From Macrostomum lignano (lineage: Eukaryota): 64,000 bases of DNA. Shown here in pieces: positions 50,202-55,923 of this stretch (the stretch's first letter is position 1; every line of letters starts with the position of its first letter). The position numbers were made by a program, and so were the translations under genes. The stretch spans positions 257,684-321,683 of the forward strand of contig NIVC01000232.1 in the NCBI GenBank assembly GCA_002269645.1. Reading direction: 5' to 3'. Below the pieces are notes generated by a model that was not told the DNA's origin, did no database searches, and saw nothing but the letters and a program-made list of their open reading frames with translations.

Positions 50202-51738
50202 GATAGATAGATAGATAGATAGATAGATAGATAGATAGATAGATAGATAGATAGATAGATAGATAGATAGATAGATAGATAGATAGAAAGATAGATAGAT
50301 AGATAGACGAATAGATAGATAGATAGACAGATAGATAGATAGATAGATAGATAGATAGATAGATAGATAGATAGATAGATAGATAGATAGATAGATAGAT
50401 AGATAGATAGATAGATAGATAGATAGATAGATAGATAGATAGATAGATAGATAGATAGATAGATAGATAGATAGATAGATAGATAGATAGATAGATAGAT
50501 AGATAGATAGATAGATAGATAGATAGATAGATAGATAGATAGATAGATAGATAGATAGATAGATAGATAGATAGATAGATAGATAGATAGATAGATAGAT
50601 AGATAGATAGATAGATAGATAGATAGATAGATAGATAGATAGATAGATAGATAGATAGATAGATAGATAGATAGATAGATAGATAGATAGATAGATAGAT
50701 AGATAGATAGATAGATAGATAGATAGATAGATAGATAGATAGATAGATAGATAGATAGATAGATAGATAGATAGATAGATAGATAGATAGATAGATAGAT
50801 AGATAGATAGATAGATAGATAGATAGATAGATAGATAGATAGATAGATAGATAGATAGATAGATAGATAGATAGATAGATAGATAGATAGATAGATAGAT
50901 AGATAGATAGATAGATAGATAGATAGATAGATAGATAGATAGATAGATAGATAGATAGATAGATAGATAGATAGATAGATAGATAGATAGATAGATAGAT
51001 AGATAGATAGATAGATAGATAGATAGATAGATAGATAGATAGATAGATAGATAGATAGATAGATAGATAGATAGATAGATAGATAGATAGATAGATAGAT
51101 AGATAGATAGATAGATAGATAGATAGATAGATAGATAGATAGATAGATAGATAGATAGATAGATAGATAGATAGATAGATAGATAGATAGATAGATAGAT
51201 AGATAGATAGATAGATAGATAGATAGATAGATAGATAGATAGATAGATAGATAGATAGATAGATAGATAGATAGATAGATAGATAGATAGATAGATAGAT
51301 AGATAGATAGATAGATAGATAGATAGATAGATAGATAGATAGATAGATAGATAGATAGATAGATAGATAGATAGATAGATAGATAGATAGATAGATAGAT
51401 AGATAGATAGATAGATAGATAGATAGATAGATAGATAGATAGATAGATAGATAGATAGATAGATAGATAGATAGATAGATAGATAGATAGATAGATAGAT
51501 AGATAGATAGATAGATAGATAGATAGATAGATAGATAGATAGATAGATAGATAGATAGATAGATAGATAGATAGATAGATAGATAGATAGATAGATAGAT
51601 AGATAGATAGATAGATAGATAGATAGATAGATAGATAGATAGATAGATAGATAGATAGATAGATAGATAGATAGATAGATAGATAGATAGATAGATAGAT
51701 AGATAGATAGATAGATAGATAGATAGATAGATAGATAG
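50202..51738. repeat. (GATA)n array 3
   Basis: ~1.5 kb. Confidence 0.99.
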
Positions 51739-54700
51739 CGAGAAAGAGCGAGCGAAGCGAGCTCTTTCGAGCTTGCTTGCCGCAGCCAATCAAGCTGAAA
51801 GCACGCACACAAGATCACCGGAAACGATTAAGGCAGCTGGAAAGCCAATGGGCGCGGTAAGCGCTTTTATCCAGAGGAACTACCTGCTGGAACCAGCCAT
51901 GCCGAACGAAAATCAGACTACTCAAGTAGTGCAAAAGAGTACGTGCAACTACCGAGAAATCTAATTTTCGTAACCGCTCCGGTGCAGGTCCTGGCTATTG
52001 ATAGTAGATAGCGAGAAAGAGCGAGCGAAGCGAGCTCTTTCGAGCTTGCTTGCCGCAGCCAATCAAGCTGAAAGCACGCACACAAGATCACCGGAAACGA
52101 TTAAGGCAGCTGGAAAGCCAATGGGCGCGGTAAGCGCTTTTATCCAGAGGAACTACCTGCTGGAACCAGCCATGCCGAACGAAAATCAGACTACTCAAGT
52201 AGTGCAAAAGAGTACGTGCAACTACCGAGAAATCTAATTTTCGTAACCGCTCCGGTGCAGGTCCTGGCTATTGATAGTAGATAGCGAGAAAGAGCGAGCG
52301 AAGCGAGCTCTTTCGAGCTTGCTTGCCGCAGCCAATCAAGCTGAAAGCACGCACACAAGATCACCGGAAACGATTAAGGCAGCTGGAAAGCCAATGGGCG
52401 CGGTAAGCGCTTTTATCCAGAGGAACTACCTGCTGGAACCAGCCATGCCGAACGAAAATCAGACTACTCAAGTAGTGCAAAAGAGTACGTGCAACTACCG
52501 AGAAATCTAATTTTCGTAACCGCTCCGGTGCAGGTCCTGGCTATTGATAGTAGATAGCGAGAAAGAGCGAGCGAAGCGAGCTCTTTCGAGCTTGCTTGCC
52601 GCAGCCAATCAAGCTGAAAGCACGCACACAAGATCACCGGAAACGATTAAGGCAGCTGGAAAGCCAATGGGCGCGGTAAGCGCTTTTATCCAGAGGAACT
52701 ACCTGCTGGAACCAGCCATGCCGAACGAAAATCAGACTACTCAAGTAGTGCAAAAGAGTACGTGCAACTACCGAGAAATCTAATTTTCGTAACCGCTCCG
52801 GTGCAGGTCCTGGCTATTGATAGTAGATAGCGAGAAAGAGCGAGCGAAGCGAGCTCTTTCGAGCTTGCTTGCCGCAGCCAATCAAGCTGAAAGCACGCAC
52901 ACAAGATCACCGGAAACGATTAAGGCAGCTGGAAAGCCAATGGGCGCGGTAAGCGCTTTTATCCAGAGGAACTACCTGCTGGAACCAGCCATGCCGAACG
53001 AAAATCAGACTACTCAAGTAGTGCAAAAGAGTACGTGCAACTACCGAGAAATCTAATTTTCGTAACCGCTCCGGTGCAGGTCCTGGCTATTGATAGTAGA
53101 TAGCGAGAAAGAGCGAGCGAAGCGAGCTCTTTCGAGCTTGCTTGCCGCAGCCAATCAAGCTGAAAGCACGCACACAAGATCACCGGAAACGATTAAGGCA
53201 GCTGGAAAGCCAATGGGCGCGGTAAGCGCTTTTATCCAGAGGAACTACCTGCTGGAACCAGCCATGCCGAACGAAAATCAGACTACTCAAGTAGTGCAAA
53301 AGAGTACGTGCAACTACCGAGAAATCTAATTTTCGTAACCGCTCCGGTGCAGGTCCTGGCTATTGATAGTAGATAGCGAGAAAGAGCGAGCGAAGCGAGC
53401 TCTTTCGAGCTTGCTTGCCGCAGCCAATCAAGCTGAAAGCACGCACACAAGATCACCGGAAACGATTAAGGCAGCTGGAAAGCCAATGGGCGCGGTAAGC
53501 GCTTTTATCCAGAGGAACTACCTGCTGGAACCAGCCATGCCGAACGAAAATCAGACTACTCAAGTAGTGCAAAAGAGTACGTGCAACTACCGAGAAATCT
53601 AATTTTCGTAACCGCTCCGGTGCAGGTCCTGGCTATTGATAGTAGATAGCGAGAAAGAGCGAGCGAAGCGAGCTCTTTCGAGCTTGCTTGCCGCAGCCAA
53701 TCAAGCTGAAAGCACGCACACAAGATCACCGGAAACGATTAAGGCAGCTGGAAAGCCAATGGGCGCGGTAAGCGCTTTTATCCAGAGGAACTACCTGCTG
53801 GAACCAGCCATGCCGAACGAAAATCAGACTACTCAAGTAGTGCAAAAGAGTACGTGCAACTACCGAGAAATCTAATTTTCGTAACCGCTCCGGTGCAGGT
53901 CCTGGCTATTGATAGTAGATAGCGAGAAAGAGCGAGCGAAGCGAGCTCTTTCGAGCTTGCTTGCCGCAGCCAATCAAGCTGAAAGCACGCACACAAGATC
54001 ACCGGAAACGATTAAGGCAGCTGGAAAGCCAATGGGCGCGGTAAGCGCTTTTATCCAGAGGAACTACCTGCTGGAACCAGCCATGCCGAACGAAAATCAG
54101 ACTACTCAAGTAGTGCAAAAGAGTACGTGCAACTACCGAGAAATCTAATTTTCGTAACCGCTCCGGTGCAGGTCCTGGCTATTGATAGTAGATAGCGAGA
54201 AAGAGCGAGCGAAGCGAGCTCTTTCGAGCTTGCTTGCCGCAGCCAATCAAGCTGAAAGCACGCACACAAGATCACCGGAAACGATTAAGGCAGCTGGAAA
54301 GCCAATGGGCGCGGTAAGCGCTTTTATCCAGAGGAACTACCTGCTGGAACCAGCCATGCCGAACGAAAATCAGACTACTCAAGTAGTGCAAAAGAGTACG
54401 TGCAACTACCGAGAAATCTAATTTTCGTAACCGCTCCGGTGCAGGTCCTGGCTATTGATAGTAGATAGCGAGAAAGAGCGAGCGAAGCGAGCTCTTTCGA
54501 GCTTGCTTGCCGCAGCCAATCAAGCTGAAAGCACGCACACAAGATCACCGGAAACGATTAAGGCAGCTGGAAAGCCAATGGGCGCGGTAAGCGCTTTTAT
54601 CCAGAGGAACTACCTGCTGGAACCAGCCATGCCGAACGAAAATCAGACTACTCAAGTAGTGCAAAAGAGTACGTGCAACTACCGAGAAATCTAATTTTCG

Positions 54701-55923
54701 TAACCGCTCCGGTGCAGGTCCTGGCTATTGATAGTAGATAGCGAGAAAGAGCGAGCGAAGCGAGCTCTTTCGAGCTTGCTTGCCGCAGCCAATCAAGCTG
54801 AAAGCACGCACACAAGATCACCGGAAACGATTAAGGCAGCTGGAAAGCCAATGGGCGCGGTAAGCGCTTTTATCCAGAGGAACTACCTGCTGGAACCAGC
54901 CATGCCGAACGAAAATCAGACTACTCAAGTAGTGCAAAAGAGTACGTGCAACTACCGAGAAATCTAATTTTCGTAACCGCTCCGGTGCAGGTCCTGGCTA
55001 TTGATAGTAGATAGCGAGAAAGAGCGAGCGAAGCGAGCTCTTTCGAGCTTGCTTGCCGCAGCCAATCAAGCTGAAAGCACGCACACAAGATCACCGGAAA
55101 CGATTAAGGCAGCTGGAAAGCCAATGGGCGCGGTAAGCGCTTTTATCCAGAGGAACTACCTGCTGGAACCAGCCATGCCGAACGAAAATCAGACTACTCA
55201 AGTAGTGCAAAAGAGTACGTGCAACTACCGAGAAATCTAATTTTCGTAACCGCTCCGGTGCAGGTCCTGGCTATTGATAGTAGATAGCGAGAAAGAGCGA
55301 GCGAAGCGAGCTCTTTCGAGCTTGCTTGCCGCAGCCAATCAAGCTGAAAGCACGCACACAAGATCACCGGAAACGATTAAGGCAGCTGGAAAGCCAATGG
55401 GCGCGGTAAGCGCTTTTATCCAGAGGAACTACCTGCTGGAACCAGCCATGCCGAACGAAAATCAGACTACTCAAGTAGTGCAAAAGAGTACGTGCAACTA
55501 CCGAGAAATCTAATTTTCGTAACCGCTCCGGTGCAGGTCCTGGCTATTGATAGTAGATAGCGAGAAAGAGCGAGCGAAGCGAGCTCTTTCGAGCTTGCTT
55601 GCCGCAGCCAATCAAGCTGAAAGCACGCACACAAGATCACCGGAAACGATTAAGGCAGCTGGAAAGCCAATGGGCGCGGTAAGCGCTTTTATCCAGAGGA
55701 ACTACCTGCTGGAACCAGCCATGCCGAACGAAAATCAGACTACTCAAGTAGTGCAAAAGAGTACGTGCAACTACCGAGAAATCTAATTTTCGTAACCGCT
55801 CCGGTGCAGGTCCTGGCTATTGATAGTAGATAGCGAGAAAGAGCGAGCGAAGCGAGCTCTTTCGAGCTTGCTTGCCGCAGCCAATCAAGCTGAAAGCACG
55901 CACACAAGATCACCGGAAACGAT
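51734..55923. repeat. 273-bp satellite, 15 full copies plus a 95-bp partial
   Basis: Monomer starts gatagcgagaaagagcg at 51734, 52007 ... 55556, 55829. Exact 273-bp period; identical ORF-track peptides. Confidence 0.98.

Follow-up and report, generated by a model that had tools for sequence, protein, structure and literature searches.

An apparently young, satellite-like 273-bp array inserted in a GATA microsatellite of Macrostomum lignano: a candidate product of break repair

The start of satellite arrays and their spread to new loci have mostly been inferred from old, degraded examples. One documented case is that of the Rsp-like arrays found within 1.688 clusters on the X chromosome of Drosophila simulans and Drosophila mauritiana, in which one junction shows 7 bp of microhomology and the other is truncated or variable (Sproul et al., bioRxiv 10.1101/846238). 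Two routes were proposed for them, microhomology-mediated end joining with reintegration of extrachromosomal circular DNA (eccDNA), or interlocus template switching (bioRxiv 10.1101/846238). A different kind of element, Cg_HINE of the oyster Crassostrea gigas, combines a left flank and a variable spacer with a right flank of 60 bp that carries a palindrome and a 3′ subterminal inverted repeat; it is dispersed and inserts at TT (PMC7492417). In the flatworm Macrostomum lignano, injected DNA integrates at random sites as head-to-tail tandem copies (PMC5730564). Here we analyze a window of 64,000 nt of M. lignano DNA (assembly GCA_002269645.1, contig NIVC01000232.1, positions 257,684 to 321,683 of the forward strand; coordinates below are those of the window), in which an array of identical 273-bp units lies inside a (GATA)n microsatellite. 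Our tentative interpretation is that this is a very young, non-coding, satellite-like array, made during the repair of a break in the GATA tract, which brought in foreign sequence. It looks like an ordinary young tandem repeat and not like a mobile element or a known RNA gene.

The array is perfectly periodic. By direct base comparison, base i equals base i+273 at every i from 51732 to 55650, which gives a perfect 273-base period over 51732-55923 on the plus strand (4192 bp, 15.36 copies, zero differences), running from monomer position 6 to position 102 and including 14 exact full monomers (starts 52000, 52273 and so on to 55549). Tandem Repeats Finder (TRF) called the array at 51726-55923, with period 273 and 15.4 copies. 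A previous reading made from the sequence alone (hereafter the sequence-only reading) had already described identical 273-bp monomers in a GATA array; this is confirmed, with the start moved from 51734 to 51732. As the copies are all identical, all 15.36 derive from a single 273-bp template. The reference monomer (52000-52272, plus strand) is composed of a 12-nt GATA-like linker, GATAGTAGATAG (52000-52011), which departs from pure GATA at two positions and is the same in all units, and 261 bp of unique sequence. The monomer has a GC content of 50.7%, compared with 31-45% in the non-coding DNA around it, and an observed/expected CpG ratio of 1.08; this ratio equals the M. lignano genome background, so an argument for a CpG island was dropped.

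The host of the array belongs to the third copy of a larger repeat. The stretch from 36.5 to 59.5 kb is a 7.4-kb block present three times (U1, U2 and U3), each copy with a GATA array and with 15-mer, 26/30-mer and 63-mer arrays. In U3, the left half of the GATA tract (50202-51738) reads 21 units, GAAA, 4 units, GACGAATA, 3 units, GACA and 352 pure units, and the right half (55926-57379, named (ATAG)n by TRF) reads 80 units, GACA, 2, GACA, 3, GACA and 272. The paralogous GATA array of U2, 7.4 kb upstream (42824-45642), is an empty site that agrees with U3 in both flanking contexts and in its markers (21, GAAA, 4, GACGAATA, 3, GACA, 96, GACA, 2, GACA, 3, GACA, 6, GACA, 559), and it has 96 uninterrupted units where U3 has 352, the 273-bp array and 80. 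Since the run is uninterrupted in U2, the array interrupts one homologous run, and joining 51738 to 55926 restores in-phase GATA. The first GATA array of the locus (GATA-A in block U1, 36578-38235) is uninterrupted as well. Two homeologous contigs, NIVC01000105.1 (L004) and NIVC01000284.1 (L006), are 93-95% identical to the window and carry one block each, with uninterrupted GATA arrays of 1.6 and 2.1 kb, and the unit has no match in either of these loci. The array is thus a true insertion of at least 4187 bp into a pre-existing single GATA run, and this part of the sequence-only reading is borne out by the marker maps, the in-phase rejoining and the empty paralog and homeologs.

A full glutathione S-transferase (GST) protein is encoded on three contigs of GCA_002269645.1 (Mlig_3_7), and the three related contigs agree with the three homeologous subgenomes (S, L1 and L2) described for the DV1 line (PMC10733133). 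The GATA-A variants are of the GAGA/AATA type in L004 and U1 and of the CATA/GACA/GATG type in L006, which has just the left context in common with GATA-A of U1; such microsatellite-internal markers could serve to tell the three subgenomes apart. The lengths of the pure runs also differ. The host run has 352 + 80 = 432 units in U3 (50330-51737 and 55929-56248) versus 96 in U2 (42952-43335), and other GATA runs are hundreds of units apart too (559 versus 272). These gaps reflect either extremely fast length mutation or tract lengths misjudged by the long-read assembly.

The 7.4-kb block is triplicated in NIVC01000232.1 and single in both homeologous contigs. The GATA arrays of U2 and U3 are hybrid: on the left their context is that of the downstream GATA-B (60889-61236), on the right that of the upstream GATA-A. 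This indicates that the blocks probably multiplied by unequal exchange between two GATA arrays 7.4 kb apart. Given these hybrids, the GATA tracts have been recombination substrates at this locus. Outside GATA, a comparison of U1 with U2 over 4.6 kb shows 1 mismatch and 4 gaps, and the sequence that follows U3 has 98.5% identity to the matching flank of U1 and 98.2% to that of U2. The variability of neighboring repeats, stated in the sequence-only reading, thus holds for the minisatellites of the window (self-identity 82-96%), but not for these nearly identical blocks. With a single mismatch in 4.6 kb between U1 and U2, the insertion would be younger than a block duplication that has itself gained almost no substitutions, which argues for a very recent event. 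At such an age 15 identical copies would be expected with no need for a special homogenizing process; the identity of the units may simply reflect age, and the array needs no function.

The same near-identity could have a technical origin, and given 1 mismatch in 4.6 kb a false assembly duplication of the blocks is also possible. On this explanation, either the array would be real but the perfect identity and copy number of its units would come from read correction and polishing, or U2 and U3 would be the empty and filled alleles of one site stitched in tandem. Mlig_3_7 was built from PacBio continuous long reads (CLR) with Canu 1.4 and polished using Pilon with multi-mapping Illumina and RNA-seq reads (PMC5730564), three subgenomes are present, 36% of the assembly length is in chimeric scaffolds (PMC5730564; PMC10733133), and U1, U2 and the left part of U3 are nearly identical. 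We nevertheless consider an artefact unlikely. Other arrays of the window retain 4-18% heterogeneity, so smoothing was not general, and CLR reads are long enough to cover the 4.2-kb array with about 1.5 kb of GATA per side (about 7.2 kb), in a window without any Ns. Moreover, the insertion would be real even if U2 and U3 were alleles.

The two ends of the array differ in their anatomy. At the left junction, which reads ...GATAGATAG|CGAGAAAG (unit-to-unit junction ...GGCTATTGATAGTAGATAG|CGAG), the 7 nt TAGATAG (51732-51738) are common to the GATA tract and to the GATA-like linker of the unit, so that the several nucleotides of homology by which microhomology-mediated insertion is recognized at an array/host junction are found here, as the sequence-only reading had claimed. 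The right junction reads ...GGAAACGAT|CT|ATAGATAG and has merely GAT as homology, plus the CT filler. Here the array stops at monomer position 102 (...ACGAT), in the middle of a unit, and the CT (55924-55925) is neither the continuation of the unit, which would be TAAGG, nor in-phase GATA. It is either an end-joining filler, as the flanking TAG reads CTA on the opposite strand, or what is left of the unit end CTAT. The break within a monomer and the palindrome that had been pointed out at this end are both present; the palindrome ATCTATAGAT (55921-55930) is perfect over 10 nt, but its DNA fold is not better than that of shuffles. The minimal insert (51739-55925, 4187 bp) begins with CGAG, finishes with GATCT and lies between the G and the ATA of a GATA unit.

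The partial units at the two ends measure 268 nt (first) and 102 nt (last), together 370 nt or 273 + 97; the ends are therefore independent, with 97 nt beyond 15 whole units. A multimeric circle opened by a single cut leaves first and last truncated units that add up to exactly one monomer (bioRxiv 10.1101/846238), and this origin is excluded by the sum of 370 instead of 273 nt. A linear concatemer or circle-templated synthesis accounts for independent ends without an extra deletion.

Any mechanism must explain the single template, the GATA-like linker in each unit, the left end flush with 7 nt of homology, the mid-unit right end followed by CT, and the 432 versus 96 GATA units. MicroDNAs, small eccDNAs reportedly described by Shibata and colleagues in 2012, are 200-400 bp in size. 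When a chromosome end primes on a small circle, the product is a run of identical copies, non-integer in number; such circle-templated 'roll-and-spread' elongation is said to go back to work by Natarajan and McEachern in 2002 and by Cohen and Segal in 2009. Applied to this locus, a broken GATA end would pair, by way of TAGATAG, with a small circle made of one unit, 273 bp long and thus of microDNA size, and closed at the GATA-like motif. DNA synthesis would then go around the circle for about 15 rounds, in a rolling-circle or break-induced manner, until the new strand left its template at ...ACGAT and was joined to the other GATA end with a short filler; its CT(A) may have arisen by brief snap-back copying of the flanking TAG. 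The circle-templated model is preferred because one event covers the single template, the left homology and the mid-unit right end, and we slightly favor such synthesis, or a linear head-to-tail product, over growth in situ. The Rsp-like insertions and the tandem integration of injected DNA in M. lignano (PMC5730564) serve as precedents for it. Rolling-circle amplification, the origin put forward in the sequence-only reading, agrees with the same three features and is possible, not demonstrated. The non-integer copy number offered there as its signature is not diagnostic, as growth in situ followed by a terminal deletion gives an equal picture.

Three points weigh against circle-templated repair. 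The 12-nt GATA-like linker comes free if the insert was duplicated in situ together with three GATA units. The right junction, with CTAT-A-GATAG compared with the unit end CTAT-T-GATAG, hints that this is the original insert/GATA junction and that part of the last unit was lost by deletion. Finally, assembly from CLR with Canu and Pilon could have smoothed differences between units, and the copy number may be inexact.

Growth in situ is nearly as good an account as the circle model, and we regard it as a possible alternative. A fragment of about 261 bp would have been captured, duplicated with about 3 GATA units to give the linker GATAGTAGATAG, expanded to about 16 copies and shortened by a terminal deletion of about 170 bp, through microhomology-mediated tandem duplication followed by unequal sister-chromatid exchange or slippage. 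This would explain why the linker is GATA-like and the same in all units, why the array begins, at its left end, exactly where the unique part does, and why CTAT-A-GATAGATAG at the right junction is similar to CTAT-T-GATAGTAGATAG, the end of the unit. Unequal exchange has been active at the locus, as seen in the 7.4-kb triplication and the hybrid GATA arrays, and at about 1 substitution per 4.6 kb since duplication several mutation-free expansion steps in 4.2 kb are plausible. The cost is at least four separate events, including an extra deletion without microhomology, and a linker that is off pure GATA at two positions; in addition, after exchange between the long flanking runs (352 and 80 units) one would usually expect an extended spacer of GATA and not 12 nt.

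The junctions would look the same, with 7 nt of microhomology on one side and a variable other side, if the array had been copied in from a homogeneous 273-bp satellite elsewhere by microhomology-mediated break-induced replication or interlocus gene conversion. Copying between loci is one of the two mechanisms put forward for the Rsp-like arrays (bioRxiv 10.1101/846238), and 15% of the M. lignano genome consists of tandem and simple repeats (PMC5730564). The donor, however, must hold 15 consecutive identical units, and no second copy of the monomer, whole or partial, was found in the 64-kb window, in the 10 kb past its right end or in the two 20-kb homeologous loci, so that we give this origin a low probability. 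Classical satellites occupy multiple loci and have variants and higher-order structure, and this locus shows one 4.2-kb array without variants. A literature search found no described M. lignano satellite or GATA feature.

The sequence-only reading had also proposed a Helitron or Helentron origin. The likeness to a non-autonomous element with central tandem repeats beside a microsatellite, such as the oyster Cg_HINE, is superficial, consisting of a satellite-like array next to a tetranucleotide microsatellite and of hairpins in the unit. HINE elements are defined by a left flank (5′ subterminal inverted repeat, complementary inverted repeat and microsatellite) and a right flank of about 60 bp (3′ subterminal inverted repeat and palindrome) (PMC7492417). 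The 273-bp array abuts GATA directly on both sides. It lacks flank modules on the left and on the right as well as subterminal inverted repeats, no 3′ palindrome follows it, and the microsatellite and everything outside it are also found at the empty paralog and the homeologs, so that the array alone was inserted. Helentrons insert at TT, and Helitrons insert between A and T without target duplication and have 5′-TC ... CTRR-3′ ends with a hairpin before the 3′ end. The site here is G|ATA, not TT or AT, TC and CTRR ends are absent, and there is no hairpin in the last 30 nt of the array. Outside tandem arrays, the window also has no long open reading frame (ORF) for a Rep/helicase. As the defining flanks, ends and target site are absent and the microsatellite is older than the array, this origin is rejected, and we give it next to no weight.

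The unit does not encode a protein. Every unit has stops in all six frames, the longest open stretch being 87 codons; exact look-ups of the 79-aa and 57-aa ORF products returned no record, and the concatenated pieces of all frames had no match at E≤10 among 5.8 billion proteins, M. lignano annotations included. The stops in six frames and the lack of protein homologs speak against a protein-coding exon or gene fragment. Contamination, vector sequence or horizontal transfer was likewise rejected after searches of plasmid and phage collections (no match to the unit), of viral contigs with two k-mers (no match), of prokaryotic genomes in one k-mer scan (nothing) and of metagenomes with 20-mers (three chance matches of 20-25 nt, none extending). 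An array of solo long terminal repeats, considered for the CA|TG junction at CCATGCC, was dismissed, as the presumed ends have no convincing terminal inverted repeat. The loops of the hairpins, inspected by eye, do not contain the NANTATTAC nonamer of a CRESS-virus-type origin hairpin, and this candidate was dropped.

Known RNA families were searched with Rfam 15, including small nuclear RNA, spliced leader (SL) RNA, microRNA (miRNA), ribozymes (hammerhead, twister and HDV-like) and rRNA. At the gathering score, the whole window yielded a tRNA-Arg alone, outside the array, and no tRNA was found in the array. At E≤10, more than 3 units searched on both strands gave chance-level matches to mir-1002 (20 bits versus a gathering score of 85) and SymR (16 versus 61), and the unit matched no family. 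The M. lignano SL is a 35-nt sequence, CGGTCTCTTACTGCGAAGACTCAATTTATTGCATG, followed by GTAAG (PMC8629364). Neither the SL nor its last 12 nt occur in the window on either strand, and the idea of an SL RNA gene, which had come from the donor GGTAAG and an Sm-like site, AAUUUUCG, was abandoned, the Sm-like site also lying within a stem. A resemblance to 5S rRNA (TGAAAGCAC ... GATCACCG ... TTAAG) was dropped, with no 5S match at E≤10, and a hammerhead or retrozyme repeat was rejected, as there is no CTGANGA core by eye on either strand of the monomer and no Rfam ribozyme match.

Nevertheless, the unit folds better than its shuffles, with z from -3 to -6 on both strands and in every circular permutation. 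The two overlapping left-end hairpins described in the sequence-only reading exist, as part of a group of overlapping short inverted repeats at 52010-52069 (GAAAGAGC..GCTCTTTC; AAGCGAGCTC-tttc-GAGCTTGCTT; AGCTTGCTTG..CAATCAAGCT) that is not clearly beyond chance, but they are statistically weak (z -2.4 as RNA and -1.05 as DNA). Most of the folding signal of the unit comes from a feature absent from that reading, a 66-nt imperfect hairpin present once per monomer (52179-52244, minus strand), with -27.9 kcal/mol, z -6.6 and 26 pairs including 3 G-U pairs. These G-U pairs form on the minus strand only, and the plus strand reaches -18.8 kcal/mol and z -4.2. The hairpin is of pre-miRNA size and is present in 15 identical tandem copies, and no known miRNA family was matched. 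As controls, 36 273-mers from non-tandem parts of the window had a mean z of -0.2 (standard deviation 1.6), and 2 of them reached z -4.9 or lower. One of the two is an inverted repeat at 24200-24416 that resembles a miniature inverted-repeat transposable element, with 58-nt arms that are 95% complementary and 16-nt outer arms.

The promoter-like motifs of the monomer are real as well: CCAAT occurs at positions 60 and 119, GGTAAG, the claimed donor, at 130 and CCGGAA at 92. By simple arithmetic, 273 bp read on two strands should contain about 0.5 CCAAT and 0.13 GGTAAG by chance, and because the counts are within chance we give them little weight. Unrelated minisatellite units of the region also contain GGCGCC and/or CCAAT/ATTGG (e.g., 18522-18808, 30900-32655, 34531-36164, 41805-42309 and 49183-49687). 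With CCAAT so common in the repeats of the region, the CCAAT-box argument for the unit is weakened further.

A functional gene array, whether of a structured RNA (pre-miRNA-like, another small RNA or a retrozyme) or of a promoter with a first exon, would be compatible with any of the origin models. The folding at every rotation, the minus-strand hairpin with its 3 strand-specific G-U pairs, the motifs just listed and a GC content above that of the surrounding non-coding DNA all point in this direction. They are set against the absence of any Rfam family, tRNA, SL or CTGANGA core, the chance-level motif counts, the 2 of 36 control segments that fold equally well and the lack of homologs for covariation. 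The array is also absent from the homeologs and is therefore not an old conserved gene. We consider such a function very unlikely, and the captured promoter/first exon or structured RNA suggested in the sequence-only reading has no database support.

The rest of the window is rich in micro- and minisatellites and contains several genes on the minus strand: a polyubiquitin gene with 3 units (19417-20106), a tRNA-Arg(TCG) (22046-22118), an intronless FMRFamide-receptor-like G protein-coupled receptor (GPCR; 24834-26228), with the inverted repeat at 24200-24416 just downstream, and the 3′ part of the GST gene (63611-64000), which is 100% identical to an M. lignano UniRef protein. The best relatives of the GPCR are 30-42% identical and come from nemerteans, annelids and decapods, and the protein itself is absent from the protein collection. 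Two 17-mer minisatellites (5613-6196 and 20577-21158) have units that are exact reverse complements, TTGGTGCTTGGCGCCCC and AGCACCAAGGGGCGCCA; as an inverted pair, they enclose the ubiquitin region at a distance of about 14 kb from each other. In reverse complement, the 15-mers at 1692-2315 agree with those at 38944-40082 at 11 of 15 positions.

On present evidence, the 273-bp array is an ordinary young tandem repeat in a genome of which 15% is simple and tandem repeats. In a fuller scenario, the 5′ end of a gene would have given rise to a 273-bp circle, rolling-circle-type synthesis from a broken GATA tract in the germ line would have copied it about 15 times, and the product would now be fixed or segregating in one subgenome only. 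This seems doubtful to us when taken as a whole. If true, it would be the birth of a satellite and the natural counterpart of tandem transgene integration in M. lignano, in a neopolyploid flatworm. The array is undegraded and keeps both of its junctions. Its empty paralog is 7.4 kb away, the two homeologs are empty as well, and the species is a laboratory animal for which transgenesis, inbred lines and public long reads are available; circles or a source copy, if found, would make the locus a good test case for the way satellites are born.

Each of the known systems shares part of this anatomy. Cg_HINE is also a short array of units of a few hundred bp beside a tetranucleotide microsatellite in an invertebrate; none of its flanks are found here, and here the microsatellite pre-dates the array. 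The transgene concatemers come from the same species and likewise turn extrachromosomal DNA into tandem copies, but they are made of injected plasmid or fragment DNA, whereas the DNA analyzed here is from the wild-type DV1 assembly, and no plasmid matched the unit. With microDNA, the unit shares its size of 273 bp, a GC-richer composition, the look of a gene 5′ end and a short homology at the presumed closure point; the circle here is hypothetical, and the fixation of such a product in the germ line inside a microsatellite is hypothesized, not documented. The Rsp-like arrays of Drosophila belong to a known family with many loci and measured eccDNA, in contrast to the single known locus in M. 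lignano, where the host is a tetranucleotide microsatellite, the units are all identical, a near-identical empty paralog is adjacent, and the first and last units do not add up to one monomer. They are nonetheless the closest documented case, as in both systems a recent, lineage-specific tandem array lies within an older repeat and has 7 nt of homology on one side, and by this comparison the M. lignano locus is a young satellite-like array, putatively formed by break repair, and not a new kind of element.

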